Part shown: positions 13,111 to 55,510 of the stretch, piece after piece | How positions within the stretch are numbered: the stretch's first letter is position 1 | How the letters are laid out: every line of letters starts with the position of its first letter | Origin: Mobula birostris | Taxonomy: Eukaryota | Length of the DNA: 64,000 nucleotides | Direction: 5' to 3' | NCBI RefSeq assembly: GCF_030028105.1 | Contig: NC_092383.1 | Coordinates: 96,929,604 to 96,993,603, forward strand | The notes under the pieces: generated by a model | Seen by the model: only the letters and a program-made list of their open reading frames with translations | Told to the model about the DNA's origin: nothing | Databases searched by the model: none | Program-made: the position numbers and the translations under genes

Positions 13111-13431
13111 CTGGGACTGGGGCTCCCCCTACCACGGTGACCGGAACTCAGGGACACTCAGTCTCCTTACCTTTTGGGAGACCAGTCAGTTCGGACGATG
13201 AGGTTTATTGGATTCGGGTATCACCCAGAAATATGATTGTGAAGTACTTGAATGGGAACATCAGCTACTTCAGTAATGAGCAGTACAAGAACAGGATAAC
13301 CTATCATCCTGGGAATGCCGGTCTGGAAATCCATAATCTACGGAGGGAGGACTCTGGTGATTATGAGGTGATTTGTACAGCAGCAAGTTCAGGAAATGAA
13401 TATAAAACAACAGTGCGACTGGAGGTGTACG
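13111..13431 (+). CDS. CD2/SLAM-family receptor A, exon: N-terminal IgV domain
   Basis: Acceptor ctcctcag (with ctgac branch-like site upstream), donor g|gtgagt, phase 1/1, 321 nt. Peptide GHSVSLP..VYW..YKNRITY..LEIHNLRREDSGDYEV..VRLEVY is a V-set domain lacking the B-F disulfide, as in the CD2 family. Confidence 0.9.
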
Positions 13432-14419
13432 GTGAGTGAGACCGGTCCCTGAAATACCCCTAATGGATGGGTGAGGTCAGATCCTGTATGTTTTTCTGTT
13501 TACTGAACCCCACTGACTACCCGTGTCCAGAGCTGGGATCACGGTCCCAGTGTAGTGAGGCTGAGTCAGTGTGAGTTTGGAGGACACACCCGTCACATCC
13601 ACCGGGACTGAGACAGGAGCCAGAAGGGATCGAACCAACATTGGGGAATCTCATGTATCTGAGACAGAGGGAGCTCAGCACACAGGGAGAATGGACCTGG
13701 TGTGAATGGCCTGAACAGTCTGTATCTGTGGGTCGCAGTTACACACTGTATCTCCAGTCAAAGGCCTGGTCTGTCATGCTCAGGGATCCCAGTTATCCAG
13801 TCTGTTTCCCGGGACACTGCTTGTTAATTGTCCAGACTGAGGTCTGAGCTCAGCGAGGTGTTTATTCCTCAGCCTTCATGCTGTGCTGTGCTGAGTGAGA
13901 CCCTGTGTGTTCATTACACTGAATTACTCCTCTGTTAGGGCACATTGTGCAGTTAAGTAATATACAAATATTAATCTCACCACAACCCATCTTCAGACAT
14001 GAAAGTGGATTGTAGATTGAATTTAAAGTGCAGCTCTGAACAGTAGTTTTCCTGTAGCTGCAGACTGAGTTGATTGCAAACCAGACAATTCTGATTAACA
14101 TTCATTTTGTGTGTCTGGAGTGTGGGTGTGAATGACAAGATATGTGAAAAATATATGTAAGCCAAGGAAGCATTGTTGGTACATTGTAACTGTACAATTA
14201 TCCTGCATTTACCTTTGACCTTTAGCATGTCACAGTATTATGTAACATTGGGTCCAGAGGCCGTTTCTTCCAAGATTGTCTCAATATGATGCCTGTTTTT
14301 GGTGAATCAGACATTTCTATATCCAGCAGCTTTGGTGTCTCTCCGGTGACTTCACGTTACAACATCCTCCATCCCAGTGTTAATGTTCACCATTTGAAGG
14401 AGGAGAACATCAGAACATG

Positions 14420-14860
14420 GGAAATAGAAAACAGAAGATAAAAAATCATGAACATGGGTTGAAGACAGAGACCTCCTCTGGGATCGAGTAGGGGAAGAAA
14501 GGGACTGAGGTTTACAAAATTATGGAGGGGATAGATAGTGTAATTGCAAGCAAGATTTTTCCACTGAAATTGGGTCAGAGTGGAATTAGAGGTCATGGGT
14601 TAAGGGTGAAAGGTAAAATGTTTAAGAGGACATCCTTCATGACACGTGCTGAGCATGTTGTATGATCTGCCAGCAGAAGTGATGGATGTGAGTTGGATTT
14701 CAAAATTTAAAAGAAATTTGGATAGGTACATGAATGGAATGGTTCTGGTGGCTATGGTTTGGGTGCGGGTTGATGTGACAAGGCAGATTAAGAAATCGGC
14801 ATGGACTAGATGGGCTGAAGGGCCTGTTCCTGTTCTGTAGTATTCTGGGACTCTATGACT
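14420..14860 (+). mobile_element. Degenerate CR1 3' fragment (intron)
   Basis: tttacaaaattatggaggggatagatag...agaggtcatgggttaagggtgaaagg...ttggataggtacatg resembles CR1 ORF2 C-terminal sequence. Confidence 0.7.
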
Positions 14861-15449
14861 CTCTGAATCAGACAGTAGTCAACAAAACCTTTCAGACAAT
14901 GAACCTGTTCTGAACATCAGCTCTATAAAGGAGGGAGAGCCACAAGTTCTGCATCAGATCCAGCTGGAGATGGGTCCTTGTCTATACATTGGTCTCACTG
15001 GAATAGTGTCAGAAGTCAGAATCAGTGTGTCAGAGTGGGAGCAGGATGGAGAATCAAAGTGACAGCAACTAGAACTTCTGAGTCACAATTGTGCCTGAAC
15101 TGAGATGTCCCTCAAGGTGGTCAGTGACACTGTGCCTGGTTTCTCAGTGGAGAGGAGGCCACCGTGTGGACACTGAGTGCAGTTCACTGCATTGGGAGTG
15201 CTCGTCAATCTCTGTTTCAGCTTTTGGTTTCCTTCATGGAGGGAAGGGAAACTGTGAAAGTTCATATGAAGCCCCCCTCCTCTGGATGTCCAAAAAGTGG
15301 AGTGGGATGTGGAGTGGTGGGAGTTGTGGGTTTGGCAGAAGAGCAGAGCGAGGTGTTACTCAGGGAGAAACTGGTCAAAATATGTAAGAAAGAGGGAAGG
15401 GAGTGGAATGTAAGTGGATCTTCAAATTTGCTGATGACAGTAGTTGTGG

Positions 15450-16110
15450 GTATAGTGGACAGTGAAGAAGACTATCAAAGCCTGTAGAAGGATCGGGACC
15501 AGCAGGAATAATGAGCCGAAAATTTGCAGGTTGAATTTAATGCAGACAAGTACGAAGCCTTGACTCTTGGGAATTAAACCAGGGTGGGACATAAATGATG
15601 AGTGGTTGGGCACTCAGGAGTGTAGTAGAATAGAGATATCTGGGAATACAATTCCATAATTTCTTGAAAGTGGTATCACAGGTAGATAGGATCATAAAAA
15701 AAGCTTTTAGCACATTGGCCTTCATAAATCAAAGAACTGAGTCCAGGGGTTGGGATGTTATGCTGAAATTGTATAAGACCTTGGAGAGGCCTAATTTGGA
15801 GTATTTGTGCAATTCTGGTCACCTACGTACAGGAAAGGTATCAATTAGGTTGAAAGAGTGCAGAGTATCAGGACTCGAGGACCTGAGTTATAGGGGAAGG
15901 TGGGAGAAACTACTTCACTCAGAGGGTCGAACACGATGCAGGTGGAAGTGTTGGAACCAGGTTCGATTTCACTGTCTAACAGAAATTGGGATAAATATTG
16001 AAAGGGATGTGGAAGGCGATGTCCAGATGAGTATCAATGGGACTAGGAATGGACTAGATGGACTGAAGGGTTTGTTTTGGCACTGCAATGCTCTATGATT
16101 CAATGGAGTC
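15450..16110 (+). mobile_element. Degenerate CR1 3' fragment (intron; counterpart about 52170-52740)
   Basis: MLKLYKTLERPNLEY motif in ORFs 15664..16098 and 52384..52626. Confidence 0.75.
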
Positions 16111-16676
16111 TCATTGAAAGGACCAGGAAGCATAGATGTTGATGCACTGAATAGGGAGACGAGTGGGGTAGAAGGAGACGGCCAGATGAACCTTACTGTT
16201 ACTTTTGGTTGGAGAGGGTATGAGAACAGAGATGAAAGAAATGACACAGACTTAAGACATCATCATAATCTGGGCAGGCAGCGTGGAGATGGAGAGACTG
16301 ACAGAATAGACTGGGCTGTGTCTTAGGTTGGACCAGGTTCAGGGCAGGTCAAGGGTGGGGCTCAGTCAGGTTTCAAAGGGAAGCTGGGACCACACACAGG
16401 AGTAACTAACGACATGGAAATGGAGAGAATTCCTGGAATAGAGCGCTATAAAGAGGAAATGGAGGAGAGTTTGTAGGTGAGTGTGGGTAGTGCACGTGGG
16501 AACTTCCTCCAGCAGCAAGTGACTGGTGAGGGAAGGGTTAAACTGTTGGGTAAAATTGAGGTGGGATTGGCTTGAAGTTCACTCTGGAGTGTTGGGGATG
16601 GGATGGAGGAGTTGGGGATCGAGGTGTCCACAAGAATCTCCTTTATTCATCTTTCATCTCTCCCTCACACCCTCAG

Positions 16677-16958
16677 AGCCCGTGTCAGGAGCAAACATCA
16701 CAGTTCAGAACATCACTGGGACTTGTAACCTCACCCTGACCTGCTCCGTGACCTCTGGCAACCCCTCCAGATTCAGTTGGAAGAGAGAAGTTACAGGAGA
16801 CAACAGCAGCCATCACATCTGGAAAGACGGAAAGACGATGCAGGTTGATTGCACAGCAGAGATGGAGGATGTTGTGTACAGGTGTGAGGCCAGAAACTCC
16901 ATCAGTGAGGACACCGCACAGGTCCGGCTGGGGGACGTCTGTAATCTGGACACATGTC
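16677..16958 (+). CDS. Receptor A, exon: IgC2 domain
   Basis: Acceptor cctcag, donor c|gtgagt, 282 nt, phase 1/1. EPVSGANITV..TCNLTLTCSV..FSW..YRCEARNSIS..DVC shows the SLAM/CD2-type four-cysteine C2 pattern. Confidence 0.9.
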
Positions 16959-18034
16959 GTGAGTGTCAGAAGATGAAGTTGGGATTTAGTTATCTCCCCG
17001 TCCCAGAAGTGTGAGATGGGACAGCACAGAGGAGCTTCAGTTTGTATCTATTCTGCACTCTGACACTGTTTGAGAGGGTACTGTAGAGAACCATTTACTT
17101 TATCAGCAACCTTCATTTTTTGTATTTTATACTCAGGCCTCTGCTCATATTTGTCAGCACAGACTGGGTGAGGAACTGCAGTACATTTTGCAGAAGGTCC
17201 ACACTGAATCAACTGTGCACTGTTGCTGGAGGGAGGGAGTGATTCGATTGGAGGGAAGGATTATTTCGGATAGCTGAGGCACTGAGTCATCAGGGAGGTG
17301 GAGGCTGAGTTTGAGGAGAGGGGTTACTGAGGGCCATTGTGAGGGAGCTGGATTAAAATCAGAGGAAATACAATCCGTGGCACATGTGCTGGGGAAGGAG
17401 GTATACTGAGAGTTTTCTTTTTGACAGAATTGGACTAATATTTGTGGAGATCTGGTCTATGATACAGGACCCTTGCTGTGAGTGATTTCAGAGGGAGAAT
17501 GTGAGAGTTAGATTAACCAGTGAGTCCATAGACACGAAGCCTGGAGCAGCTGAATCAGGACATTAACTCAGCCTCAGTTCATCACACAATGGGGAAAATC
17601 GTTGCGACGTTTGCAGACACGAAGCCCGGAGCAGCCGGATCAGGACACTGACTCAGCCTCAGTTCTGCGGGGAACGGGGCAAATCTCACAGAGCAGTAAT
17701 GGACAGTGTCAGGGAGCCGGATCAACATCATCAGAGATACAGACAGGGACAAAGACACGAGGGAAGAGGGGCTGCAGAGGGATAGTGTGAGGGAACAGGA
17801 TTAACATCAGTGGAGAAACAGTCAGTGGCACTGGAGACTGAGGAAGAGGGGTTTCTGAGGAACTAGGTAAGGGAGATTGAATGACATCACTGGACATACA
17901 TTTAGTGACTCCGGGAGTTTGTGGAGAGGAGGGATGAAGGGAAAACGTGAGGAACTCAGTCAGTATCAGTGGGTACATTCAGTGATACACGGTGATGGGG
18001 AAGAGGGGTTCCTGGTGACAGTGTCAGGAAGCAG

Positions 18035-18453
18035 TGTCACCACGGTTCCGATATGGCCCAAGTGCGGAGTGAGAGACACTGAAGCAGGTCGATAGTTCAG
18101 ACTTTCATTCAAACAAGGGGAAATAAAACAATAAGTGCTAGGCCAAAGAGGGTCGTTAACTAAAACTCTCGAAAGGGAAACGAAGCCTACACTGCGGCTG
18201 AAAAGAATATCTAAACATTAAACGAATACCGTTAGTCTTCAGAGTCAGTGATTTTGAAAGTCCAATGGCTCAGGGAAGGCCGAATGCAAAACGGCAGCGA
18301 AGCTTTGCTATGCTCTGTCCAAGTCTCGACAAGCTCTACGACGACAAGAATGTAGTTAAATACCATCACAATTAAATAATAATTACCCAACACGTGCAAA
18401 TTCACAAGTGCGATTGCCGTATCTACTGTACTGCCGAATCTGTGGTTGTGACA
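18035..18453. mobile_element. Solo LTR
   Basis: Inverted termini TGTCAC...GTGACA, with near-perfect 5-bp TSD agcag/agcgg. Confidence 0.6.
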
Positions 18454-18484
18454 AGCGGGGGTAATATCAGACACAAAACAATCA

Positions 18485-19169: not shown

Positions 19170-19625
19170 GCAGTGATGTGATAGTGACTAGGGGATGAGG
19201 GGATTGAGGGGTATTGGAGGGGAGGGGAAGGGAGGGGAGAGATGTGATGGTGATTGGAGGGAATGGGGATGGAGAGAGGACTGAGGGGTATTGGAGGGGA
19301 GAAGAGGGGTGCAGGACAGTGATGCAATGGTGATTAGAGGGAATGGGGAGCAAGGAGATTGAGAGGTATTAGGGGGAGAGGTGCAGGACAGCGATGTGAT
19401 GGAGATTGGAGGGAATGGGGACTGAGGGGTCTAGGGGTATTGGAGGGGAGGAGAAGGGAGAGGAGTGATTTGATAGTGATTGGAGGGAATGGGGAATGGA
19501 GAGAGGACCGAGGGGTATTGGAGGGGAGCAGTGCAGGACAGTGATGTGATGGAGATTGGAGGGAATGGGGTGGAGGGACTGAGGGATGTTGGAAGGGAGA
19601 GGAGCAGGGTGGAGAGGTGGTGTTT
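19170..19625. repeat. GA-rich minisatellite (about 60-70 bp unit) in intron 3 of gene A
   Basis: Recurring gtgatgtgat.g.gattggagggaatgggga...gaggggtattggagggg units. It is absent from gene B. Confidence 0.8.
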
Positions 19626-19789: not shown

Positions 19790-19939
19790 CCCCTAAAACA
19801 ACAGCAGCGTTAGACTCAGTGATGCTGATGACTGTACTGTCAGCGGTGGGGACCCTCCTGATCTTTGTTGTCACTGTGATCCTCACGGTCACACGGAGGA
19901 GAAGACCTGAGGGAAGGGAAGTAACTTCAGGGACTGAAG
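19790..19939 (+). CDS. Receptor A, exon: stalk + transmembrane + juxtamembrane
   Basis: Acceptor ttacag, donor g|gtaagt, 150 nt. VMLMTVLSAVGTLLIFVVTVILTV is followed by the stop-transfer sequence RRRR. Confidence 0.85.
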
Positions 19940-20102
19940 GTAAGTGGATCTGACACCCTGTCGTTGAGTCTAGCATTTGGGGGAGGGAGAGAGAGGAGGT
20001 GGGCAGGGGGGTGACAACAGGGATGGGAGAGAGGGGTTAGATGGGGTAAAGTGGGGAATAGTTTTAGTACAGACCCTGTCACCTCTCCTTTCTGTCCCAC
20101 AG

Positions 20103-20191
20103 ACCAAGCGGAGACGGGCATCATTTACACAAATCTTCAGAGGATGCAGAAGAATCGCAGTGTCTGGCAGCCCCCCAAGGGGAATGACAGG
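20103..20191 (+). CDS. Receptor A, cytoplasmic exon 1 with ITIM (IIYTNL, 20120-20137)
   Basis: Acceptor tcccacag, donor agg|gtaatg, 89 nt, phase 1 to phase 0. It has identical structure in copy B. Confidence 0.75.
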
Positions 20192-20989
20192 GTAATGACA
20201 GACACATTACCCCTGGAAAGAGGCCACTGTGGGTCACTCACCCTCCTTGGTGCAGACTGAACATAAGGCCTACATGTAATCTGCACAATCCCAGGATCAA
20301 CCACAGGTCCCCGTCACCGGAGATCGTTCCAACCACCACTGCGGAACTCAGCAGCGCACACACGGAGGCACAGCAAGATCCCACGTACCACTGAGGAGTC
20401 AATTGAAACTTTGCCTCAGTGATCTCCAGGTCTGGTCTGGCAGATCTAACAGTAATTGTACACTCCACATACACACACACAGTTACTGAGCACATTGTCC
20501 CCACACTCCCAGTCACTGGGCTACACTGACACCAACCCCACACACTGTCACTGCGATACACGGTCACCAACACACCGAGTCATTGAGGTACATTCTCCCC
20601 CCCACACCCAGTCACTGGGGTACCCTGTCCCCACACTCCCAGTCACTGGGTTACCCTGTCCCTATACATGCAGTTATGCCCAGTAGTATGTGCATTTCTG
20701 ATGATCAGTTATGGATTTAATATTCGTGTCGATGGGCAGTGTGTGAGTTCATTCAGAATGCACTGAGAATGAGGCCATGCTGATGCTAGGTTAGTATCAT
20801 TGTTTGACAGTCGATTGGGTGATCCGAGTTTCCATCATTGTGTGTCGTTTTGCATGTCCAGGTCTTTTGTGTCCATGTGTCACGTTTTGATGTGCCCAAT
20901 CTCCATGTCTCCCCTCTCCAGAGTCCTTGTCTCTGTATCTCCCTGCTTCCATATCCTAACTCCGCCCTGGTCTGTAGCTCCCTAACTGG

Positions 20990-21455
20990 GCCCTGGTCTG
21001 TATCTCATTGTCTTGATGTTCTGGTCTGTATCTCCCTGCCTCTGTGTCCTGGTCTGTATTTCCCTGTCTCTGTGTCCTGGTCTGTATTTCCATCTCTCTG
21101 GGTCCTGCTCTGTACCATCTGTCTATGGTTTCTGTTTCTGTGTCCTGGTCTGTATCTCTCTGTCCCTGTGCCCTGGTCTGTATTACCCTGTCTCTGTGTC
21201 CTGGTCTGTATTTCCCTGTCCCTGAGTCCTGGTCTGTATTACCCTGTCTCTGTGTCCTGGTCTCTATTTCCTGTCCCTGGGTCCTGGTCTCTATTTCCTG
21301 TCCCTGGGTCCTGGTCTGTATTACCCTGTCTGTGTCCTGGTCTCTATTTCCTGTCCCTCGGTCCTGGTCTGTATTCCCCTGTCCCTGGGTCCTGGTCTGT
21401 ATTACTCTGTCTGTGTCCTGGTCTGTATTTCCTGTCCCTGGGTCCTGTCTCTGGG
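20990..21455. repeat. Pyrimidine-rich tandem repeat (about 20-28 bp unit, ccctgtc..gtcctggtctgtatt); older, more diverged counterpart about 55000-55310
   Basis: Directly visible. It produces the low-complexity ORFs 20838..21470 and 21044..21508. Confidence 0.85.
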
Positions 21456-21548: not shown

Positions 21549-21602
21549 TTTGTTGGTCCGGAAGTAGTTTGCAGACTCACCCCACTGACTGCGAGGCAGT
21601 AA
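21549..21602 (+). CDS. Receptor A, last coding exon (FVGPEVVCRLTPLTARQ*), no ITSM
   Basis: Acceptor tttctgttgtag, homologous to 55394-55510. A 1-nt deletion relative to B gives an early TAA. Confidence 0.6.
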   Translation, partial: FVGPEVVCRLTPLTARQ

Positions 21603-21938
21603 TGTACCGTGCCAGACCCCATCGTGGATGGGCTGAGGACAGAGCCCCTGGACAGTGTCCTACAGTCTACAATGATCCTTCTTCTTGCTGAACAGCACAG
21701 ACTCTCAGGGGGGACCGAATATGGACTGGTGGGTGGGTGATACTGGGGTCCTCTGAGTCTCACCGTTGGGCTGAGGTCTACAGGACAAAAGCTTGGCCCC
21801 TCTTTCCTGCTGTGCTTTGTAGGTATTGAATATTAGTTTAACAGTTGTCACTAGCTTTCTGCAGCGGAACAGATTTTGTGGGAACATGTCCCCTGTAAAT
21901 CATTGATCTATTTACCCCAACTTCTACTGCATTTCATA

Positions 21939-21944: not shown

Positions 21945-21954
21945 TGAATAAGGC

Positions 21955-22405: not shown

Positions 22406-22406
22406 T

Positions 22407-28064: not shown

Positions 28065-28453
28065 CTCGATCGGTAGCTGCTGTTTAAGTTTCTCCAAACT
28101 GAAACATTTAGCCGGGGCTACCCCTTCAGCCTCCTGCAGTCGAGACGTCAGCTTCTTTGGGGACTCCTTCAACTCTCGCCACAGCCTCAGCAGTTCTGAC
28201 TCACGGTTCTTGGCCATCTCAATCTGGGACGCAGTTACCCCACCAGCTTCTTCCACACTGACCTGAAAAGCAGCAGTTAAAGGATGTTCAGCCTCCAGTT
28301 TTTTCTTCCTGATGACTTCTTCCAGGTCAACTTTCAGTTTTTCCACTTCACTTAAACTGCCGATAGTCATCTTCAGGTTCCCTTCAAGTGTCCGCCTCCC
28401 TTTTCCGAGATCTGTCCTCCATTTCTTCACCTCCTCGGGAGTGTAGTCAAACT
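28065..28453 (-). pseudogene. Captured sarcomeric myosin heavy-chain rod fragment, 3' part (MYH16-like by recollection)
   Basis: [33 protein letters not shown]; [26 protein letters not shown]; [18 protein letters not shown] match myosin [34 protein letters not shown] and KKLAQRLQEAEE..KCSSLEK. Confidence 0.85.
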
Positions 28454-36200: not shown

Positions 36201-37162
36201 AAGCAGTGAGAGAGAATGATAAAGAAAATCCTGATATCATTGCCAGAAACGGTTGTTAACCTGCAGAATGAGTCGTAAGCCTGAGGATTGCGATTGATAA
36301 TGAACACAGCAAAGGGTCACAGATATATCGTTGAAGAAAGTGAAAATGGAAAGTTGAAGGATATTAAGGACAGACTGTGAGAGCCGGAATCAGGACATGA
36401 AACAAACACAGCAGCAGGTACAACTGTAGTTCCCTTACAGACAGACGTGGGTCTCTGTTATGGGGAATGAAGGAACAGTAGAGGAAATAACCATGGCTTT
36501 TTGTGTGTCTTTGTGGAACACACAAAAACCTGCCAGAAATACAGGATAGACAAGTGTTGAATGCTAGTGTAGAAATAAAATCAATCAGCGTCAATGATGA
36601 AATAACATCATGAAAATGGATAATTGACACAGGCCTGATGATCTCCATCCCGGAGTCTGTGACAAAGTGTCAGTAGAGTTACTCAACTTCCTGGTTATCA
36701 TCTGGCAAACTCTACAGTTTCAGGAATGGTTCCTACAGACTGTTTCAAAAAGGAGGGAGAGAGAGAAAACTGGGAACCACACATCTCCCCAGCTGACACT
36801 GGGAGCGGGGACAATGTTGGAATCTGTGATAATGGGTGAGAAATGGAAGCTGAAGGGGAATTATCACAAAGATTCACCAGACTGGTTTCTGATGTGGTGG
36901 GTCTGTCATGTCACTAGTGTGGGTAATAGACTGGGTCTCTATTCAAGAAGTTCAAAATAAGTTTTATTATTAGAGTACGTATATGTCATCACATACAACC
37001 CTGAGATTCTTTCTCTGCGGGCATACTGAGCAAATCTATAGAACATGAACTGTAAACAGGATCAATAGACAACGAACTGTGAAAATGCAAATATAAATAA
37101 ATATCAATAAATAACCTATTCTTGAAGCTGGTGGTGTAGGTCCTGAGGCTCTTGTACCTTCT

Positions 37163-42011: not shown

Positions 42012-42267
42012 GTGAGAGTCGGACAGTGCAGAGTGTACAGGAGCAGCCGGTGCAAGGAACCCCCTGGGGACGGGAGGTGCATCCTGTGGGACATTTCCCA
42101 GAGACGGCTCAAGTTGTGCTGAACCAGCTCTGGAGGAGAGGTTGGGGGACCCAGATCCAGGGACAATTCCGGCTGAGTGGTGGTCACCTTGAGTTCGATC
42201 AGTCGACCTCCTGACACCTGCACACACACAGTGAGGGTATCGCAGTATCTCACCCCAAACTTCCTAG

Positions 42268-45200
42268 TGTGAGGAGACCCTGAAGTACCCCTATGAACTG
42301 TGCTTTTGAAAAGAGAGAGAGAGAGAGTTATTTACCATCGATAGCTTGTTTGTAAAAGAGAGAGAGACAAAGACTAACTGTGGGACTGTCACTTTAAGGA
42401 ACGAGAAAGAACTGGTTAACTGTTGGATTTTTGCTGGAGTTAGACTCAGCACCAAGCAGCTCGTAAGTTGCTATGGTGACCGAAGGCGGTGTTATTTAAT
42501 GGACACACGATGTTATGATTTTTGGCAGGTTGTTGATACTTCTTCTAGGACTTTTTGCCTGCTTGCATTTCTTCACAGAGAGAGGAAGGAGGAGTTATTT
42601 GAGTGACAATTGATGCTCAGCACGAGAAGATAAATAGGAGGTCAGATGACACAGACCTCTGACGCATGTTTGGACACTGAATGAGCATTGTTGTGCCTGC
42701 AGAAAAAGTGGGTGTTGGAGGATCGATCAGGCGGATCGATCCATCGCTGTTGCAGTGAAAAAAGGAAAGGGGTTGACTGGTGGGGAGTTGTCCATGTGTC
42801 CACCCTGGCCTGGGGGATAGCTCCACCACAGAAAATCGGTCCCCTTTGTTAAAGTCACAGTCAGTGACTTTGAAAGAATTTCGAAGGACAACGAAAAGAT
42901 CGATGGCGTCAGCTCACCTGAAGATTCAAATCTCTCCCTCTCTCTCTCTCTCTCTCTCCATCACTATTCAAATCAATACCACGAACTGAACTGAACTGAC
43001 TTTACTCATCATCATAAGACTGTATTTTTACCGCTAGACTTAAAGAAGCTTGGTTTTTCATACATATATTTCCACACTTACTGATTCCGTACATATATAT
43101 ATAATCATTGCTAACCTGTTTGATCTATTTACATTTATATTACTGTATTGCATAGTTACTAATAAATATTATTGGTTCATAGCAATACTTGACTCTAAAG
43201 TGTTTTCCATCTCTGTTTGGTTCTTTATTCCCATCACGGGGTTCGTGACATGAATTGGGGCCTTCATCCGCGATATGAACAAATTGTTCAGGAGGCTGGT
43301 ATGAACTGATTGAGGGAAAATCCCTTTTGATTTGGTTGTGTGGAAATACAGCAGAAATGGATGTTAGTGTTGAGGAGTTTATGTTGGAACCAACCCCAGA
43401 AGCGTTGGATGATGCTACGAGGGTTGTGCTGTTGGGAATTGCTCAAAAGTTAAAACTAAAGGTGACCACTATAATGAGGAAAGCTCAGATGCAGATGATA
43501 ATAGCCCAGCATTATATAGATAAGGGAACGTTTGATGAGGAGGCGTTAGAGTTGTTCATGGAAGGTGAATCTGCTGAGGATGAGCTTCAGCTTCAGTTGG
43601 AAAAGTTAAGAATGGAGCATGAATTGAAATTAAAACAGTTCAAGAAAGAAGCTAAAGAGGCAGCAAGACACAGAGAAGAGGCAGGAAGACAGAGACAGCT
43701 CAAAAGGGAGAAATGCCAATGTGAAGATCACGTGGCAGGAAGACAGAGACAGTTTAAAAAGGAGAGGTGGCAGCAAAGAGGTTTAGTGTCGGACACTGAT
43801 GATTTTTACAGCTTGGAAGGGCTTGTTTTGTGTGATGAATTGAAAAGTTGTGTTGCTGATGAGGTAAGGATACCCAGATGCAGAGGATGCCGCTACCTTG
43901 CGGGGGTTTGATAAGAAAACAGACAAAGTTGTTTTAACCCACGAGGTTGAGTTTATTCCAGAAAAGAGTTTGCCAGAGAATAGCTGTGAGGCTCGGGGTG
44001 ACCTTGAATTTGAAACTGGGACAAGTGATGACAGCCCAGAAGAGGCAGCTGTTCCGATTGACTGTGTTCAGGTTGTGGAAGTACCTGTGAGTTCACAGGA
44101 TTCTGAACCTTGTGTTAAAGCTCAGTTAAAGTCTGAAGTGTTGAACAAGGAATTAGAAACAAGAAAGAACAAGGAAAGATAATGGATTATTGTATTGATA
44201 GAGTGGGGAAGGCTAAATACCTTATTAAGATTGACCTGTTAAAAGGATGCTGGGGTGTTCCTTTAACAGAGAGGGCTAAAGAGATATCAGCATTTGTGAC
44301 ACCGTCTAGACTGTATGAGTACAATGTCTTACACTTCGAGATGAAAAATGCAGCCGGGACATTTCAAAGAATGATCAATTCTGTGATTGGAGAGTTAGAG
44401 AGCACAGGGGTTTATATCAAAGATTTGGTGGTCTGGAATGTCACATGGGAAGAGCATATTGCAGTGGTAGAAAAACTGTTTGACAGACTTTCCAAGGCCA
44501 ATCTTACTGTGAACCTCGCTAAAAGTGAGTTTGGCTATGACACAGTTACATATCTGGGTTATGTGATGGGCCAAGGCCAACTGGCTTCTGTACAGGCCAA
44601 TGTTCAAGCTATTGCTGAAGTTCCTGTTCTGACTGGCAAGAAAACTTTGAGAAGGATTTTAGGAATGGTTGGGTATTACTGTAAGTGTTGTAAGAACTTT
44701 GCTGACATCGATCTCCCCCTAACAAAACTCCTGGGGAAATGTGAAAGATTTGTATGGAATGACCTTTGCCAGGAAGCATTTGAACATCTGGAAACCATTC
44801 TGTGTTATAATCCTGTGCTCAAAGCACCTGATTTTTTCAAAGCCATTTTCTATAGCAACAGGCGTTCGTGACAAAGCTGCTGGGGCAGTACTGTTACAGG
44901 AAGGAGTTAATGACATTGAACATCCAGTAGCTTATTTCTCAAAGAAATTTAATGTATACCAGAAAAAATATTCAACTGTTGAAAAGGAATTACTAGCACT
45001 TATTCTGGCTTTACAACATTTTGAGGCCTATGATCAGAGACCTCAAAATCTTTCTGTTGCCCAGAGACCACTTGTGGTTTACATGGGTTATAACCCTTTG
45101 ATGTTTCTAACTGAGATGAAGGATAAGAATAGAAGATTGTTAAATTGGAGTCTGATATTGCAGTAATGTGACTTAAAAATCAAACATGTGAAAGGTATTG

Positions 45201-46354
45201 ACAATATTATAGCTGATTAGTTATCCAGATATTAAGTTGGAAATTGAACACATTTTTGCTCAGTTATCTGATGATTTTACCTGTATTGTTTCAAACTCTG
45301 TAATTTACGTCTGGACAAAAAAAAATAGTCTTCATCAATTGGTTTTCCTCTGAGGAAGGGGAGTGTGAGGGGACCCTGAAGTAACCCTATGAACTGTGCT
45401 TTTGAAAAGAGAGAGAGAGAGAGAGTTATTTACCACCGATAGCTTGTTTGTAAAAGAGAGAGAGAGACAAAGACTCTCTGTGGGACTGTCACTTTAAGGA
45501 ACGAGAAAGAACTGGTTAACTGTTGGATTTCTGCTGGAGTTGGAGACAGCACCAAGCAGCTCATAAATTGCTATAGTGACCGAAGGCAGTGTTATTTAAT
45601 GAACCCTCGACGTTATGATTTTTGGCAGGTTGTTGATACTTCTTCAAGGACTTTTTGCCTGCTTGCATTTCTTCACAGAGAGAGGAAGGAGGAGTTATTT
45701 GAGTGACAATTGATGCTCAGCACAATAACATAAATAGGAGGTCAGATGATACAGACCTCAGACACATGTTTGGACACTGAATGAGCATTGTTGTGCCTGC
45801 AGAAAAAGTGGGTGTTGGAGGATCGATCAGGCGGATCGATCCATCGCTCTTGCAGTGAAAAGAGGAAAGGGGTTGACTGGTGGGGAGTTGTCCATGTGTC
45901 CACCCTGGCCTGGGGCATAGCTCCACCACAGAAAACCGGTCCCCTTTGTTAAAGTCACAGTCGGTGACCTTTAAAGGATTTCAAAGGACAACAAGAAGAT
46001 CGACGGCGTCAGCTCACCTGAAGATTCAAGTCTTTCCCTCTCTCTCTCTTCTCCATCACTACTCAAATCAATACCACGAACTGAACTGAACTGAATTTTA
46101 CTCATCATCGTAAGACTGTATCTTCTTGCCCCTAGACCTAAAGAAGCTTGGTTTTTCATACATATATTTCCACACATACTGATACTTACATATATATATA
46201 TATAGAAAATCATTGCTAACCTGTTTGATTTATTTACATTTATATTACTGTATTGCATAGTTACTAATAAATATTATTAGTTTATAGTAATACTTGACTC
46301 CAAAGTTCTTTCCATCTCTGCTGGCTCTTTATTCCCGTCACAGGGTTCGTGACA
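42268..46354 (+). mobile_element. Internally deleted Gypsy LTR element (probably Gmr1-like), upstream intron of gene B
   Basis: LTRs 42268-43250 and 45364-46354 (TG..CA), 4-bp TSD ctag, degenerate Pro-type PBS at about 43256-43274 and PPT gaggaaggggag. It retains gag, RT (KIDLLKG.W.VPL) and RNase H remnants. The empty site is in unit A near 12838. Confidence 0.92.
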
Positions 46355-46623: not shown

Positions 46624-46944
46624 CTGGGACTGGGGCTCCCCCTACCACTGTGACCGGAGCTCAGGGACACTCAGTCTCCTTACCTTCTGGGATCCCAGTC
46701 AGACCGGATGGTGAGGTTCATTGGATTCGGGTATCGCCCAGAAACATGATTGTGAGGTACTCAAATGGGAACATCAGCTACTTCAGTAAAGAGCACTACA
46801 AGAACAGGATAACCTTTCATCCTGGGAATGCCGGTCTGGAAATCCATGATCTACGGAGAGAGGACTCTGGTGATTATGAGGTGATTTGTACAGCAGCAAG
46901 TTCAGGAAATGAATATAAAACAACAGTGCGACTGGAGGTGTATG
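46624..46944 (+). CDS. CD2/SLAM-family receptor B, exon: IgV domain
   Basis: Same splice sites and length as in A, open frame, 13 aa differences from A. Confidence 0.9.
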
Positions 46945-48231: not shown

Positions 48232-51200
48232 GACACACAAAAAGACAGTTCAATTGGCGGTACTGGGAGTACCCTCACCTCTACGGACACCTCCTGGCAT
48301 CACGACAGGTAGAGCTGGGTGCTGACGTCAAAAGTCCCTGAGGAGAGAGAGGTCCAGGATGTTACGGGTGGGGACCCAGCACCTCTCCTCAGGACTGTAG
48401 CCCTCCCAGTCCACAAGTACTGGAGGCCTGCGACGAACATCCAGCTTTCGACGCACCGTGAAGGCCTCTGACCCATCGATGAGCTGCTGGGGAGGGGTGT
48501 TTTAGGGTCAGGACACAGGGGGTGGCTCATGAAAGGCTGGATGCAGGACACACCGAAGGTGGGATGAATGCAGTGGAGAGTGGAGGGGACTTTGAGACGG
48601 ACGGCGGCAGGGCTGATGACTTCAGCAATGGGAAAGGGGCCATTGAAGTGAGGGGTGAGCTTGCAGGAATTTACCTTGAGGGGCAGGTCTCGGGTTGAAA
48701 GCCACACACACAGCCCATCCTGGTAACGTGGGGCCTTGCAGCGATGGCGGTCAGCTTGACGCTTGATCCTAGCAGAGGCACGGAGAAGGGCAGAGTGAGT
48801 GTGCCTCCATGTTCACTGATAACAGCGGATGAATGCCTCGGCAGATGGAACGCCAACCTCCTCCTCCTGGGCAGGAAACAGTGGAGGTTGGTAGCCAAGG
48901 CAGCACTCGAAGGGGAACAGACCAGTGGAAGAGGACGGATGAGAGTTTATAGCGTACTCATCCCAGGGTAGCTGCTGACTCCACGTGGAGGGTTTCTGGG
49001 AGGCCAAGGCACTGCAACACAGTCTCCAGCTGTTGGTTTGCCCACTCGGTCTGGCCGTTGGTCTGTGGGTGGAATCCATACAAACCGCCGACTGATGAAG
49101 GCCTGAGTACGCTTGGTTCCAGGGTGACAGGATAACTGGGAACAATGACCCCACTGCAATACCTGTGAGCGGACAGAGCTGGGAACATCAACACGATTAG
49201 TGGGGCATTGACTAGGGCCTGCCTTGATCTGTTGAGCAACTTACACAATGGATTCAATGTCCCTTTGCACTGCACCCATGAGACAGTGAGCAGGGAGAAT
49301 GACATCGGGGACCTCACGGGTCTTAGTGGAGGGAAATCTTCAGGAGAGGGTATCAGGTTTTCCATTCTTGGAATCGAGGCGGTAGGACAGAGTAAAATTG
49401 AATCTTGAGAAAAACCGGAACCAATGAGTTTAACGGCATGTCCCTGAGAATATCATTTACCAGGGCTTGGAAGACGGCCAGGGCATTGGTGAGACCGAAT
49501 GGCATAACCAGATACTCGTAATGGCCTGAGGTGGTGTTGAAGGCTCTCTTCCACTTGTCCACTTTGTGCATGCGGACAAGATGGTCGGCGTTACGGAGAT
49601 CAAGCTTGGTGAAAACTGAGTCTCCTTGCAGTAGTTCAAACACCGAGGTCATGAGTGGAAGAGGGAAACGGTTCTTAACAGTGACTTCATTCAGTCCCCG
49701 GTAATCAATGCATGGACGCAAGGAGCCGTCCTTCTTTTCAAGAAAGAGCAAACCGGCACCAGCAGGGGAGGAAGACGGCTGGATGATGCCTGCAGCCAGA
49801 GACTGTTGAATGTACTTATTCATGGCTTCTGTTTCAGGTACAGACAGGGAATACAGGCTCCCCTTGGGGAAGATGTGCCAGGCAAGGGGTCAGTGGCACA
49901 ATCATATGGACGATGAGGCGGCAGGGAAGTGCCCGGGACTTGCTGAACACAGCCTTGAGGAGGGATGGCACGAAGGTCGGGAATTCCTCGAGGGGGATCT
50001 GGGCTTGGAGACAAGGGGATCTGAACATGGCGGAGGCAGTGGGAGTGACAGAATGGGCTCCAGACTACAAACTTATGACTGACCCAGTCAATGTGGGGGT
50101 TGTGTTTAACTAACCAGGGATGTCCAGGACAATAGGAATTTGAGTCGTCAATAACATAAAGGGTTAACTGTTCATGATCATTTCCGGATAAACTGAGACT
50201 CACTGGGGCCGTGACATGGGTGATGTCAGCCAGTCTCTGACCTTTCAAGGCATTGTCCATCAATGGTGACTGGAGAGCAGATGTGGATAATCCCCACTGG
50301 GCAGCCAACCCAGAATCGATAAAACACCCCTCCACACCAGAATTGACCAAGACGGAGACTGCTCGCCGTTGGGCGTCCCACTCCAGAGAAGCAGGTATGA
50401 GAGTGAGTGGCATCAAGGAGGGCCAGACAGGGGTCACGTTCACCAATACTCCTCGTCCTACGGGTGAGCACTTGGCTTTTACTGGACAGGTGGAGATGAA
50501 ATGTCCTGCTGGGTCACAGTACAGACAGGAACGGGTGCTGATTTTCCTTTGTCTTTCAGTCGGCCTCAGGCGGGTACAGTCAACATGCAGAGCCTCGGGC
50601 TCTGGAACGGGAATTGTAGATGAGGTCAAACAGCAGGGCAACGTAGACTGACGAGGAGCTTGGAACCCCTCGCTCTGCAGCGCTGCTGAAATCAAACATC
50701 AATACGAATGGCCAGATTTGCCAGGGCTTCAAAGGTGGCAGGAAGCTCCTGGGTGACCAACTCATCTTTGATGTCTTCGGAGAGGCCGTTCAGGAAGGTG
50801 TCGTACTGTGCCTCCGAGTTCCAGCCACTGGAGGTGGAACTCTACGGCGTAATCTGACACAGATCTGCACCCCTGATGCATGTGCAGCATTTCATGGGCA
50901 GTGTCTCTCCCATATTTGGAGTAATCAAACACTTTTCTCATCTCCTCAGAAAATAACTGAAAACTATAGCAGAAAGGGGAGCCTGCCTCCCAGACAGCTG
51001 TTCCCCATTCTCTCGCCCGACCAGACAGTTGGGTGATGATGTAGGCTACCTTGGCTCGATCAGTCAGAAATGTTGTTGGTTGTAACTCAAAAACGTGGGT
51101 GCACTGGGAAAGAAAAGAGCGGCAGGTACCGGGCTCATCTGAGTACCTTTCTGGAGGAGGCAGTCAGGGCTTTTGGACAGGAGGAGCACGCGGGAACACA

Positions 51201-51942
51201 GAGGGTGGGGTAGAAGATACAGTGACAGAATGTTGATGGATGCTCTGGGGCAGCTGGAGTGACTGAGTCTGGGCCACAAGAGGGGCTACATCAGCAGAAA
51301 CCGACTCCGCTGCCCTGAACACCGACTCCAGCTGGTTCTGGGGTCTCACCAGCATCACTCCCAGTTGTTCCAGGGCAGCTCTCAGACAACCAGGGTCTGT
51401 TGGTTCCATTCTGACCAGATTGTACTGTCGAGACACTGGAGCAGGGATCCAATCACAGACCCAGTACTGTGCACACAGTGATATTATTGAGTTACAAATC
51501 CCAAGGAGCAAACAAGGTCAGTGTCAAAGTTCATGCATTGATCAAAAGTTCCAGAGAAATCCAAAAACCAGAATCAGCAAACAGGCAGAGTTGATATTCA
51601 GACAGACAGAGTACAGATACAAATGCTGGAAAGGCTCAGGAAAATTCATTGGCACAATCCAGCAACAAACAGGTGAAAACACAGGACTGAAATACACTGA
51701 GCAATAAACAGAGAGGCAGATGATAGGTTAGCACAATGAGACACAGGGGGCAGCAATACAGGTAATAATGAGAAACAGGTGAGGGACGGAGTACTGAGTA
51801 ATACAGGGGCTGGAGTAGCACAGGAGCGGGGACAGGAACACATGGGGCATGAAAACAAACAAGAGCACATGGCAATACAAAACCACAGACTGACGGCTAG
51901 TGGGAAAGACACAAAAAGACAGTTCAACTGGAGGTACTAACA
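48232..51942 (-). mobile_element. Degenerate chromovirus (sushi-like Gypsy) in intron of gene B
   Basis: gag [41 protein letters not shown], integrase HPQTNGQTE and chromodomain [17 protein letters not shown]. The 5' LTR is at about 51426-51942. Only about 35 bp of the 3' LTR remain at 48232-48268. Confidence 0.88.
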
Positions 51943-53295
51943 GAATCAGACAGTAGTCAAAGAAACCCTTCAGCCAGTGAAACTGTTCTGAACATCAGCT
52001 CTATAAAAGGAGAGAGAGCCTCACGTACTGCATCAGATGCAGCTGGAGACGGGCCCTCGTCCATTCAATGACCTCCACTGGAGCAATGTCAGAAATCAGA
52101 ATCAGTGTGTGTCAGAGTGGGAGCAGGATGGAGAATCAAAGTGACAGCAACTAGAACTTCTGAGTCACAATTGACAAATGGAATTTAATGCAGACGAGTA
52201 CAAGCTCTTGACCTTTGGGAACTAAACCGGGGTGGGACTTAAATGAGGAGCAATTGGGCACTGAAGAGTGTAGTAGAGTAGAGAGATCTGGGAATGGAAA
52301 ACCATAATTTCTTGAAAGTGGTGTCACAGGTAGATAGGGTCATCATAAAAAAGCTTCATAAATCAACGTATTGAGTATAGGAGTTGGATGTTATGTTGAA
52401 ATTGTACAAGACCTTGGAGAGGCCTAATTTGGAGTATTTGTGCAATTCGGGTCACCTACATACGGGAAAAGTATCAATAAGATTGAAAGAGTACAGAGTA
52501 TCAGGGCTTGAGGACCAGAGTTACAGGGGAAGATGGGGGAATTTCTTCACTCAGATGGTGGAACAAGGTGCAGGTGGAAGTGTTGGAACTAGGTTTGATT
52601 TCAATGTCCAACAGAAATTTGGATAAGTATTGGGAGGGATGTGGAAGGCGATGACCAGTTGTGTATCAATGGGACTAGGAATGGACTAGATGGACTGAAG
52701 GGTTTGTTTTTGCACTGCAATGCTCTATGTTTCAATGGAGTCTCATTGAAAGGGCCAGGAAGCATAAATGTTGATGCACTGAAGGTGGAGACCAGTGGGG
52801 TCGAAGGAACCGTATTGGTGCTTTTGGTCGGAGAGGGTGTGAGAACAGAGATGAAAGAAATGACACAGACTCAAGCCTTCATCATAATCTGGGCAGGCAG
52901 AGTGGAGATGGAGAGACTGACAGAGTAGACTGGGCTGTGTCTTGTATTGGACCAGATTCAGGGCAGGTTGGGGCTGGGGCTCACTCAGGTTTCAAAGTGA
53001 TGCTGGGACCACACACAGGAGTAACTAACGACATGGAAATGGAGAGAATTCCTGGAATAGAGAGCTATAAAGAGGACATGGAGGAGAGTTTGTCAATGAG
53101 TGTGGGTAGTGCACGTGGGAACTTCCTCCAGCAGCAAGTGACTGGTGAGGGAAGGGTTAAACCGTTGGGTAAAATTGAGGTGGGATTGGCTTGAAGTTCA
53201 CTCTGGAGTGTTGGGGATGGGATGGGGGAGTTGGGGATCGAGGTGTCCACAAGGATCTTCATTATTCATCTTTCATCTCTCCCTCACACCCTCAG

Positions 53296-53577
53296 AGCCC
53301 GTGTCAGGAGCAAACATCACAGTTCAGAACATCACTGGGACTTGTAACCTCACCCTGACCTGCTCCGTGACCTCTGGCAACCCCACCAGATTCAGTTGGA
53401 AGAGAGAAGTTACAGGAGACAACAGCAGCCATCATATCTGGAAAGACGGAAAGATGATGCAGGTTGATTGCACAGCAGAGATGGAGGATGTTGTGTACAG
53501 GTGTGAGGCCAGAAACCCCATCAGTGAGGACACCGCACAGGTCCGGCTGGGGGACATCTGTAATCTGGACACACGTC
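53296..53577 (+). CDS. Receptor B, exon: IgC2 domain
   Basis: Same splice sites as A, 282 nt, open, 5 aa differences from A. Confidence 0.9.
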
Positions 53578-53979
53578 GTGAGTGTCAGAGGATGAAGTTG
53601 GGATTTAGTTATCTCCCCGTCCCAGGAGTGTGAGATGGGGCAGCACAGAGGCGCTTCAGTTTGTATCTATTCAGCACTCTGACACTGTTTGAGAAGGTAC
53701 TGTAGAGAACCATTTACTTTATCGGCAACCTTCATTTTTTGTATTTTATACTCAGGCCTCTGCTCATATTTGTCAGCACAGACTGGGTGAGGAACTGCAG
53801 TACATTTTGCAGAAGGTCCACACTGAATCAACCGTGCACTGTTGCTGGAGGGAGGGAGTGATTAGATTGGAGGGAAGGATTATTTCGGGTGGCTGAGGCA
53901 TCGAGTGGTCAGGGAGGTGGAGGCTGAGCTTGAGGAGACTGTTTACTCATTAGGAAATATTTTCTCCTCTGCATTATAG

Positions 53980-54129
53980 CACCTAACACAACAGCAGCAG
54001 GAGATGCAGTGACCCTGGTGATCGTACTGTCAGTGGTGGAGACCCTCCTGATCTTTGCTCTCACTGTGATCCTCACGGTCACACGGAGGAGAAGACCTGA
54101 AGGAAGGGAAGTAACTTCAGGGACTGAAG
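53980..54129 (+). CDS. Receptor B, exon: stalk + transmembrane (with Glu) + juxtamembrane; GC donor
   Basis: Acceptor ttatag, 150 nt. VTLVIVLSVVETLLIFALTVILTVTRRRR. The donor is AAG|GCAAGT where A has AAG|GTAAGT. Confidence 0.82.
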
Positions 54130-54287
54130 GCAAGTGGATCTGACACCTTGTCGTTGAGTCTGGTATTTAGGGGAGGGAGAGAGAGGGGTTGGGCAGGGAG
54201 GTGACAACAGGGGTGGGAGAGAGGGCTCAGATAAAGTGGGGAATAATGTTAGTACAGACCCTGTCACCTCTCCTTTCTGTCCCACAG

Positions 54288-54376
54288 ACCAATCGGAGAC
54301 GGACATCATTTACACAGATCTTCAGTGGATGCAGAAGAATCGCAGTGTCTGGCAGCCCCCCAAGGGGAATGACAGG
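54288..54376 (+). CDS. Receptor B, cytoplasmic exon 1 with ITIM (IIYTDL, 54305-54322)
   Basis: 89 nt, same splice sites as A. Confidence 0.75.
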
Positions 54377-55393
54377 GTAATGACAGACACGTTACCCCTG
54401 GGAAGAGGCCACTCTGGGTCACTCACCCTCCTCGGGGCAGACTGAACATAAGGCCTACATGTAATCTGCACAATCCCACGATCAACCACAGGTCCCCGTC
54501 ACCGGAGATCGTTCCAACCACCACTGCGGAACTCAGCAGCGCACACACGGAGGCACAGCAAGATCCCACATACCACTGAGGAGTCAATTGAAACTTTGCC
54601 TCAGTGATCTCCAGGCCTGGATTGTACACACCGCACAGTCACTGAGTGCACTGTCCCCACACACCCGGTCACTGGGATACCCTGTCCCCACACTCCCAGT
54701 CACTGGGTTACCCTGTCGCTGTACATGAGGTTATGCCCAGTAGTATGTGCATTTCTGATGATCAGTCGTGGTGTTAATATTTGTGTCGATGGGCAGTTAG
54801 TGAGTTCATTCCGAATGCACTGAGAGTGAGACCGTGTTGATGCTGGGTCAGTATGATTGTTTGTCAGTTGATTGGTGCTGACTGGGTGATCTGAGTTTCC
54901 ATCATTGTGTGTCGCTTTGCATGTCCAGGTCTTTTGTGTCCATGTGTCACGTGTCGATGTGCCCAGTCTCCATGTCTCCCCTCTCCATGGTCCTTGTTTC
55001 TGTATCCAGTCTCCATGTCCTGTCACTAGATCCTGGTCTATATCTCCCTGTCTCTGTGTCTTGTCTCCCAGTCCTGGTCTGTATCTCCTTGCTTCTATGT
55101 CCTTGTCTAAATCTCCCTGCCTCTGTGTCCTCATCTGTATCTCCCTGTCCCAGGGTCCTGGCCTGTATCTGCCTATCTCGATGTCCTGTCTACGGCTCCC
55201 AGTCTGTATCTCCTTGTTTCTGTGTGCTGTCTCCAGGTCCTGTCTCTGTGTTCTGGTCTCTATCTCCCTGAATGGGTCCTGGACTCTATTTCCCTGTCTG
55301 TGTTTCCCAGTCTCCAAGAATTCCTGACACAGTGTGTCCTGTCCCTGTTTCCCTTAAATCACCCAGAGCTGACAGGTTCTGTTTCTTTTGTAG

Positions 55394-55510
55394 TTTGCTG
55401 GTCCGGTGGTCGTTGCCGAGACTAATCCCACTGAGTATGCTGCAGTGATGCACCATGCCAGACCCCCCATGGATGGGCTGAGGACAGAACCCCCGGACAG
55501 TATCCTGTAG
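55394..55510 (+). CDS. Receptor B, last coding exon with ITSM (TEYAAV, 55430-55447)
   Basis: Acceptor tttcttttgtag. Phase 0 gives FAGPVVVAETNPTEYAAVMHHARPPMDGLRTEPPDSIL*. Confidence 0.7.
   Translation, partial: FAGPVVVAETNPTEYAAVMHHARPPMDGLRTEPPDSIL

Follow-up and report, generated by a model that had tools for sequence, protein, structure and literature searches.

Tandem CD2/SLAM-family receptor genes with tyrosine-motif tail exons in the giant manta ray

Receptors of the CD2/SLAM family tune the activation of lymphocytes and natural killer cells. SLAMF6/NTB-A and SLAMF1, 3, 5, and 7 share one plan, a leader, a V-set immunoglobulin (Ig) domain, a C2-set Ig domain, a transmembrane (TM) segment, and a tail, with one exon for each module; in SLAM receptors the V domain lacks the canonical disulfide, the C2 domain carries the cysteine pattern C-x5-C…C…C, and the tail bears one or more tyrosine-based switch motifs of immunoreceptors (ITSMs), TxYxxV/I. 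Here, we describe two recently duplicated genes of the same plan, A and B, lying in tandem in a 64,000-nucleotide stretch of the giant manta ray genome (Mobula birostris, RefSeq assembly GCF_030028105.1, contig NC_092383.1, positions 96,929,604 to 96,993,603 of the forward strand). This whole stretch is called the window, and all coordinates below are positions within it. An earlier analysis of the letters of the window, here called the sequence-only reading, had proposed a tandem pair of CD2/SLAM-family receptors with divergent signaling tails, A with an immunoreceptor tyrosine-based inhibitory motif (ITIM) only and B with an ITIM followed by an ITSM.

Other receptors resemble the manta pair in part. 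CD48, a glycosylphosphatidylinositol (GPI)-anchored protein without a cytoplasmic tail, comes close to it in the V domain. CEACAM proteins also begin with a V-like domain that lacks the disulfide, followed by C2 domains, and the tails of CEACAM1 are of ITIM type. The tails of SIRPα (ITIM1 and ITIM2) and PD-1 (ITIM and ITSM) show the same motif order and chemistry as the full tail of the A/B clade, (I/V)xY(T/A)xL and then TEYA(x)(I/V); in PD-1, the ITIM engages the N-SH2 domain and TEYATI the C-SH2 domain (PMC12151841). The ectodomains of SIRPα and PD-1 are unrelated to those of the ray genes, so that this resemblance is convergent or confined to the motifs, and their motifs stand ~24 to 25 residues apart, compared to 36 in the ray tails.

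Gene structure and family membership

Exon models of A and B were built independently of the sequence-only reading, on the basis of translations in all six frames and of the sequence flanking candidate exons. Both genes lie on the forward strand, and each consists of a leader, V, C2, and TM exon followed by two cytoplasmic exons, cyt1 and cyt2. In gene A, exon 1 (10135 to 10189) encodes the signal peptide MNTRHLLTSCWLTLCASL plus one base and ends in phase 1 at the donor GTAAGT. Exon 2 (13111 to 13431) encodes the V-set domain (Pfam V-set, 3e-10), in which the canonical cysteine pair is absent and a single off-position cysteine is found. Exon 3 (16677 to 16958) encodes a C2-type domain with the pattern GTC-x5-C…YRC…VC and two additional cysteines, and exon 4 (19790 to 19939), which ends at a GT donor, encodes a stalk, an uncharged TM helix, and an RRRR stop-transfer signal. 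The ITIM IIYTNL (20120 to 20137) is contained in exon 5 (cyt1, 20103 to 20191), whereas exon 6 (cyt2, 21549 to 21602) is truncated by a 1-nucleotide deletion that brings in a stop after 17 codons.

Gene B repeats this order. A candidate leader exon (35549 to 35603, MNTRHLLISCWLTLCASL) with an intact GTAAGT donor lies 11 kb 5' of the V exon (46624 to 46944; Pfam V-set, 5e-12). The C2 exon (53296 to 53577) is 97.9% identical to that of A, and the TM exon (53980 to 54129) has a glutamate in the middle of the membrane span (VVETLLIF) and a GC donor, AAG|GCAAGT. The two tail exons are open frames that are absent from the RefSeq model of B: cyt1 (54288 to 54376) contains the ITIM IIYTDL (54305 to 54322), and cyt2 (55394 to 55510) contains the ITSM TEYAAV (55430 to 55447) and ends at a stop at 55508 to 55510. 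The tyrosines of the two motifs are 36 residues apart. All exons of both genes are preceded by a polypyrimidine tract and AG at their acceptors, and all introns are in phase 1 except the one between cyt1 and cyt2, which is in phase 0. With the V exon taken as the start, the spliced reading frame stays open for 297 codons in A and 318 codons in B, and the predicted proteins carry five or six N-glycosylation sequons.

These models agree with the sequence-only reading in the end coordinates of the units, the splice phases, the positions of all three motifs, and the tyrosine spacing of B. The five exons it gave to each unit are all present, but a sixth, the leader, had been overlooked, and the splice sites are clean with the reservation that the TM exon of B has a GC donor in place of GT. 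A short in-frame leader (MMGRLASS…) directly 5' of the V exon was considered and dropped: it is out of phase in A, and the leader confirmed by RefSeq lies 3 kb upstream.

Unit A is 100% identical to the M. birostris RefSeq protein P0002 (XP_072135118.1, "CD48 antigen-like isoform X2"), bearing out the cartilaginous-fish origin suspected earlier. Beyond the V-to-cyt2 model, P0002 adds the leader peptide MNTRHLLTSCWLTLCASLS, encoded at 10135 to 10189, and the leader-V junction T|CT codes for serine, as in P0002. The V, C2, and TM segments of B are each contained exactly in M. birostris P0167 (XP_072133767.1). Both genes are already present in RefSeq as automated models, and with the V-set matches and the identity of A to a RefSeq protein, the observation of two tandem receptor units is not due to chance.

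The assignment of A and B to the CD2/SLAM family is supported, as the profile match, the predicted fold, the arrangement of the cysteines, and named relatives agree on it independently; SLAM-type ITSM tails in relatives of the pair, described below, point the same way. Pfam recognizes the V-set domain in both genes and a generic Ig/C2 domain. The one cysteine of the V exon stands two residues beyond the canonical YxC position, with a leucine at the B-strand position, and the exon aligns with the cysteine-less V domains of CD48 and SLAMF5, in keeping with the disulfide-less V domain that had been claimed. Compared alone to solved structures, the V exon matches CD48 best (1.5e-4), followed by a CD48/CD2 chimera and SLAMF5; the C2 exon alone finds only generic Ig matches among them (contactin and LRIG), and a family profile is needed for it. 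A profile of 35 family members, searched against solved structures, matches SLAMF6/NTB-A across V and C2 in a single stretch (1.5e-25), the best two-domain match, followed by CD48/CD2 (7.5e-21), CD2 (2.5e-19), SLAMF5, CD48, and CD58 (1.5e-14). Two-domain CEACAM1 structures score between 2e-14 and 1.7e-12, trailing SLAMF6 by ~10 orders of magnitude.

Predicted structure leads to the same neighborhood. The AlphaFold model of protein A has a mean predicted local distance difference test score (pLDDT) of 76.8, with most ectodomain blocks >90, and shows helices at residues 3 to 16 (leader) and 223 to 256 (TM). A Foldseek search with this model places CD48 first among solved structures, followed by NTB-A, rat CD2, CD58, NTB-A again, and human CD2; ranks 1 to 7 and 9 are all CD48, NTB-A, CD2, or CD58, and no CEACAM or HEPACAM is found within the top 50 neighbors. 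Four cysteines of the C2 domain (in P0002, C142, C148, C195, and C214) are each present in all, or in no fewer than 90%, of the 35 family members, and the ray pattern tC-x5-C…YrC…vC aligns with TCELHLTC…YTC…LCE of NTB-A/SLAMF6. The four-cysteine C2 domain of the earlier analysis is correct for these conserved positions but not as an exon total, which is five in B and six in A: beyond the four there is one extra cysteine in B and two in A, and such unpaired extra cysteines in V and C2 set both genes apart from SLAM receptors. An exhaustive HMMER search with the V exon of B returned 255 proteins at E ≤ 0.001. Ten matches were looked up by name. Those from outside the rays are a "signaling lymphocytic activation molecule" of the elephant shark, SLAMF8-like and SLAMF5-like proteins of a sturgeon and a frog, respectively, and an unnamed turtle Ig-like protein; the first three, all with SLAM-family names, are the nearest relatives outside rays.

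Membership in the CEACAM or HEPACAM family, the alternative that the sequence-only reading had itself put forward, is disfavored by the profile scores, the fold ranking, and the cysteine pattern, the C2 domains of CEACAM proteins having a single disulfide compared to the four conserved cysteines of the ray C2 domain. A few ray members of the family are nevertheless automatically named CEACAM5-like or HEPACAM2-like. Orthology to CD48 is rejected, because A and B carry a TM helix, a basic RRRR stop-transfer signal, and tyrosine-motif exons, whereas CD48 is GPI anchored; the designation "CD48 antigen-like" in RefSeq follows the best hit and does not denote orthology. With mammalian SLAMF members, too, no one-to-one orthology is shown, and the ray genes form a clade of their own.

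Origin and predicted partners of the tail motifs

How did two neighboring genes come to have different tail exons? We scanned the tails of 50 family proteins for tyrosine motifs. A double ITSM of the SLAM type occurs in numerous ray members, with TIYAQV…36…TVYETV (in more distantly related ones) and TIYAEV…36…TLYDTV as examples; TVYSEV and TVYATV are found in a protein of the elephant shark; and the linker QPP(E/K)GN is common to the ray tails. The tail of the sister clade reads (T/I)VYA(N/D)I…36…T(V/E)YAAV. Compared to SLAM receptors, the A/B clade now has an ITIM at the place of the proximal ITSM and a TEY-type distal motif, IIYTDL…36…TEYAAV. This tail is found, together with the six-exon architecture of A and B, in P0165 (XP_072135115.1) and P0166 (XP_072133947.1) of M. 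birostris and in P0169 (XP_059805773.1) of the stingray Hypanus sabinus, which are 77 to 81% identical to A. All three retain the full tail in RefSeq, whereas A is truncated and the model of B is tail-less. The ITIM-then-TEY order, which had been likened to that of PD-1, SIRPα, and CD33-type Siglecs, is thus present in the open frame of B as well as in P0165, P0166, and P0169, and the 36-residue spacing is conserved across the ray family. Because it is common to paralogues and stingray, the ITIM+ITSM cassette is, judging from these alignments, ancestral to the A/B clade and derived from an ITSM+ITSM tail through point changes with the spacing kept. The conservation of the cassette from Mobula to stingray is also better sequence evidence of function than the comparison of A with B.

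By the same comparison, the ITIM-only state of A is a derived one. Relative to B, cyt2 of A has a 1-nucleotide deletion after FVGPEVV, and a stop follows 10 codons on. The former ITSM of A (21584 to 21601) is now out of frame, and even in the old frame its tyrosine codon has become a cysteine codon (TDCEAV), so that the distal ITSM has been lost through the deletion plus the Tyr-to-Cys change. Isoform X2 of A in RefSeq corresponds exactly to our model, and isoform X1 reads through the cyt1 donor; both are ITIM-only, as had been read from the DNA. Farther downstream, the old-frame cyt2 of A (21603 to 21690, …AVMYRARPHRGWAEDRAPGQ…) resembles the C terminus of stingray P0169 (…AVMYRASPSRGWPEDRAPGQ…), while B, P0165, and P0166 share a distinct, frame-shifted ending (…ARPPMDGLRTEP…). 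Since the old frame of A resembles the stingray protein instead, the B-type ending downstream of the ITSM is itself derived.

An in-frame stop also lies four codons beyond the TM-exon donor of both genes (19940 to 19953 in A and 54130 to 54143 in B), where the read-through encodes GKWI before the stop (…SGTEGKWI and stop in B). A read-through stop after G(K/E)WI, or after SKWM in Hypanus, is kept in several models (P0003, P0004, P0005, P0007, and P0167). Since a number of RefSeq models end there, the family may regularly yield a tail-less isoform through retention of the intron.

Each gene has the architecture of a type I receptor, with a leader, a disulfide-less V domain that presumably presents the face for ligand binding, a C2 domain with two presumed disulfides, a single TM helix, and a tail. 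The V domain may bind another family member, and Src-family kinases would phosphorylate the tail tyrosines, which would then dock SH2 proteins. The ancestral tail IIYTDL…36…TEYAAV would act as a bidentate inhibitory module, presumably by recruiting SHP proteins. The N-SH2 domain of SHP-2 prefers I, L, or V at position -2 from the phosphotyrosine (pY), T, V, or A at +1, and L at +3, and its C-SH2 domain prefers T and A at -2 and +1, respectively (PMC12151841); the ray motifs IIYTDL and TEYAAV agree with the first and second of these preferences, respectively. The SH2 pockets of SHP proteins are reported to be conserved over jawed vertebrates, including sharks (PMC12151841), and ITYADL…TEYASI of SIRPα binds SHP-2's tandem SH2 domains with ~1 µM affinity (PMC3958483). 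With respect to SHP-2, the partners named by the sequence-only reading therefore fit published preferences. A is predicted to be an attenuated, single-ITIM receptor. B may mostly give a tail-less or nonsecreted product or may be decaying, because of its GC donor, the long terminal repeat (LTR) element in its first intron, and its membrane glutamate.

Duplication, family expansion, and the state of gene B

The duplicated unit extends from ~7.9 to 21.7 kb for A and from 34.0 to 55.5 kb for B, with 89 to 95% nucleotide identity, introns included. The tandem pair recognized from the sequence is confirmed, but the duplication takes in more than the exons. The candidate leader of B falls within the duplicated stretch at 33977 to 37146. 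Overall divergence between A and B is ~8%, and 8 of the 13 differences in the V domain fall within residues 12 to 32. A tract of ~800 bp around the C2 exon (16433 to 17232 versus 53050 to 53850) is 95 to 99% identical, reaching into both introns, compared to ~85 to 90% elsewhere, which points to probable gene conversion between A and B.

In a tree of 45 proteins with ectodomains, computed by maximum likelihood from all well-filled columns and having long outgroup branches and a weak root, A, B, and P0003 of M. hypostoma group as an unresolved trio within a Mobula-only clade of seven (support in the Shimodaira-Hasegawa-like approximate likelihood ratio test [SH-aLRT], 98), itself nested in a clade that also takes in proteins of Hypanus and Hemitrygon (SH-aLRT, 100). 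The 99.8-Mb chromosome of GCA_030028105.1 that bears A and B has at least 11 M. birostris family models. In addition to the two genes, the 64-kb window contains one more leader exon and a relic of a C2 exon. The third leader exon is a copy of MNTRHLLTSCWLTLCASL on the reverse strand (3615 to 3669), head-to-head with that of A and 6.5 kb from it. It belongs to an inverted copy of the A/B 5' region at 650 to 5072, of which 2056 to 5072 is inverted relative to 34150 to 37162 and 9345 to 11731; this copy is the start of a third gene, whose V exon would lie past the left window edge. The relic is a decayed C2-like pseudo-exon on the forward strand (61510 to 61800) with stops and frameshifts, closest to another ray subfamily, "SLAM family member 5-like" (P0020/P0013; identity up to 67% across 36 residues), and its surroundings gave no V or TM relic. 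With at least 11 models on one chromosome and a decayed C2 pseudo-exon in the window, the sequences support a lineage-specific, birth-and-death expansion in rays, and the expansion suspected from the pair itself is upheld.

Gene B has been altered in its first intron and its TM exon. Intron 1 measures 2.9 kb in A versus 11 kb in B, where it contains an LTR retroelement on the forward strand (42266 to 46354; LTRs at 42266 to 43250 and 45362 to 46354, 6.4% diverged). The element has a Ty3/gypsy-like reverse transcriptase and RNase H, TG…CA ends, and sense orientation, and its 3' end lies 270 bp upstream of the V exon. The first exon of the paralogue P0004 is likewise derived from a similar element. 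Relative to A, the membrane span of B has a Gly-to-Glu change (54013 to 54015 region) at a site where tail-less P0004 has an arginine. P0004 and P0005, both tail-less, have a further arginine earlier in the span, and the charged TM residues of tail-less members hint at adaptor-coupled (activating) partners. Splicing of the TM exon of B to cyt1 through the GC donor is possible, because functional GC donors have AAG|GCAAGT as their consensus, and the frames of both tail exons are open and differ hardly at all from the tails that RefSeq splices in P0165 and P0166. The predicted signaling of B through ITIM and ITSM is not secured, however, and its output is uncertain: of the divergent tail outputs proposed earlier, the ITIM-only tail of A stands, whereas the ITIM+ITSM tail of B is present only as an open frame.

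Several repeats accompany the two genes. A near-full-length open reading frame 2 of a long interspersed nuclear element (LINE), with endonuclease and reverse transcriptase, lies between A and B (28356 to 31257, forward strand), and a LINE fragment lies between the head-to-head leaders (5163 to 7722, reverse strand). The V-C2 intron of B holds a gag- and reverse transcriptase-bearing LTR-type element (48900 to 51200, reverse strand). A 28-bp minisatellite of ~11 or more copies (80 to 88% matches) occupies most of the cyt1-cyt2 intron of A (20966 to 21447), and its counterpart in B (55031 to 55270) is shorter and more degenerate. The C2-TM intron of A has a 149-bp repeat at 19206 to 19600 and carries a 2.4-kb insertion that B lacks.

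Competing explanations and significance

Beyond the gene structures, the family membership, the loss of the ITSM in A, and the conservation of the cassette, which are established, we think it likely that A and B are tandem paralogues of a ray-expanded CD2/SLAM branch whose ancestral bipartite phosphotyrosine tail has been reduced in A and has an uncertain fate in B. Several points weigh against this explanation. The gene models rest on DNA sequence and RefSeq automated models. The RefSeq model of B (P0167) joins a first exon at 43357 to 43564, within the LTR retroelement, to the V exon and has no signal peptide; it lacks the candidate leader and both tail exons and terminates at the stop that directly follows the TM exon, and the 10,787 bp spanned by its coding sequence agree exactly with the LTR-derived start and the post-TM stop. 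A homology search at full length gave no full-length B protein in the collection searched. The cytoplasmic exon usage proposed earlier is accordingly found in A but not in this model of B. Among published SHP-2-binding motif pairs, the spacing is 23 to 30 residues (PMC3958483), which the 36 residues of the ray tails exceed. The ratio of nonsynonymous to synonymous substitution rates (dN/dS) between A and B is 0.74 over the four shared exons, with 0.54 for V and 1.05 for TM. Purifying selection between the two genes, at first suggested by a mismatch of 5.7% over all exons versus 8.5% in introns (p = 0.006) and by the lack of exon insertions or deletions (indels) in 842 exon bases versus 3.2 expected (P = 0.04), was rejected, since the initial p value was due to the C2 tract: with the tract excluded, exons differ by 7.5% versus 8.6% for introns (p = 0.44), and 0 exon indels compare to 2.6 expected (P = 0.075). 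As the exon/intron difference disappears in this way, the A/B comparison alone does not prove selection on both copies, and one or both may drift.

Much of this also suits a less probable account, in which duplicate B, perhaps along with A, is decaying. The contrast in outputs would then capture moments of birth-and-death decay instead of functional diversification, the truncation of A would be a first lesion, and B would make no ITIM+ITSM receptor at all. The GC donor, the sense LTR element in intron 1, the TM glutamate, and a RefSeq model without signal peptide or tail are what such decay would leave in B; the equal divergence of exons and introns outside the C2 tract and the dN/dS values agree with it, and the C2 relic 6 kb downstream shows that decay occurs in the cluster. 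Yet all exons of A and B keep open frames and consensus acceptors at ~8% divergence, with no indel in the exon bases compared, the GC donor has the consensus functional form, and the tail of B is nearly identical to tails in use in the RefSeq models of P0165 and P0166. More doubtful still is a paired-receptor system, in which tail-less forms are intended products and B and the tail-less paralogues act as decoys, ligands, or adaptor-coupled activating partners of the inhibitory ITIM+ITSM members. The post-TM read-through stop conserved in several Mobula and Hypanus models and the arginines in the membrane spans of tail-less P0004 and P0005, with glutamate in B where P0004 has arginine and A has glycine, would fit such a system, but the tail-less models may reflect an annotation pipeline that misses short downstream exons, and glutamate, unlike lysine or arginine, is not a usual residue for pairing with adaptors of the DAP12 or FcRγ type.

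Least probable among these alternatives is a SLAM-style switch, in which TEYAAV recruits SAP/EAT-2 and B-type receptors are activating with the adaptor and inhibitory without it. TEYAAV fits the TxYxxV/I consensus, and the family is SLAM related, with relatives that carry canonical TIYAQV and TVYxxV motifs. However, the TEY motif has a glutamate at pY-1, where high-affinity, phospho-independent binding of SAP requires a hydrophobic residue (PMC12151841), the phosphorylated TEYDTI of CRACC/SLAMF7 bound neither SAP nor EAT-2 in the one published test found (PMC3958483), and the proximal ITSM has become an ITIM in the A/B clade. Because of the pY-1 requirement and the CRACC result, we consider the SAP switch less likely than SHP recruitment, and the adaptor part of the earlier partner claim is weakened; by sequence, the cassette matches the published tandem-SH2 preferences of SHP-2 better than those of SAP.

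In the open-access literature searched, we found no paper on SLAM-family genes of cartilaginous fish, and nothing specific by way of a manta genome paper that covers immune genes. The pair is an ordinary part of a ray-specific gene-family expansion, and the current understanding of the family is unchanged by it. A more far-reaching and decidedly tentative idea is that a myliobatiform SLAM branch rebuilt its double-ITSM tail as a SIRPα/PD-1-like ITIM+TEY module and that a manta paired-receptor set is now diversifying by single-nucleotide events, namely, the frameshift, the replacement of a GT donor by GC, and the introduction of charges into the membrane span. Such a set would comprise full inhibitory, single-ITIM, tail-less, and possibly adaptor-coupled forms (with Arg or Glu in the TM segment); if this were true, it would be a cartilaginous-fish counterpart of the KIR, LILR, SIRP, and CEACAM paired systems, which are thought to be pathogen driven. 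On the reading we favor, that of a ray-expanded branch with an ancestral bipartite tail, the locus reveals a large SLAM-like family in rays that is still turning over and shows that one of its branches converted a "switch" tail to an inhibitory ITIM+ITSM module and then lost parts of it via very small mutations. This bears on the correct naming of these genes, which are not CD48 orthologues, on the choice of immune markers in rays and sharks, and on comparisons of how inhibitory tails originate.

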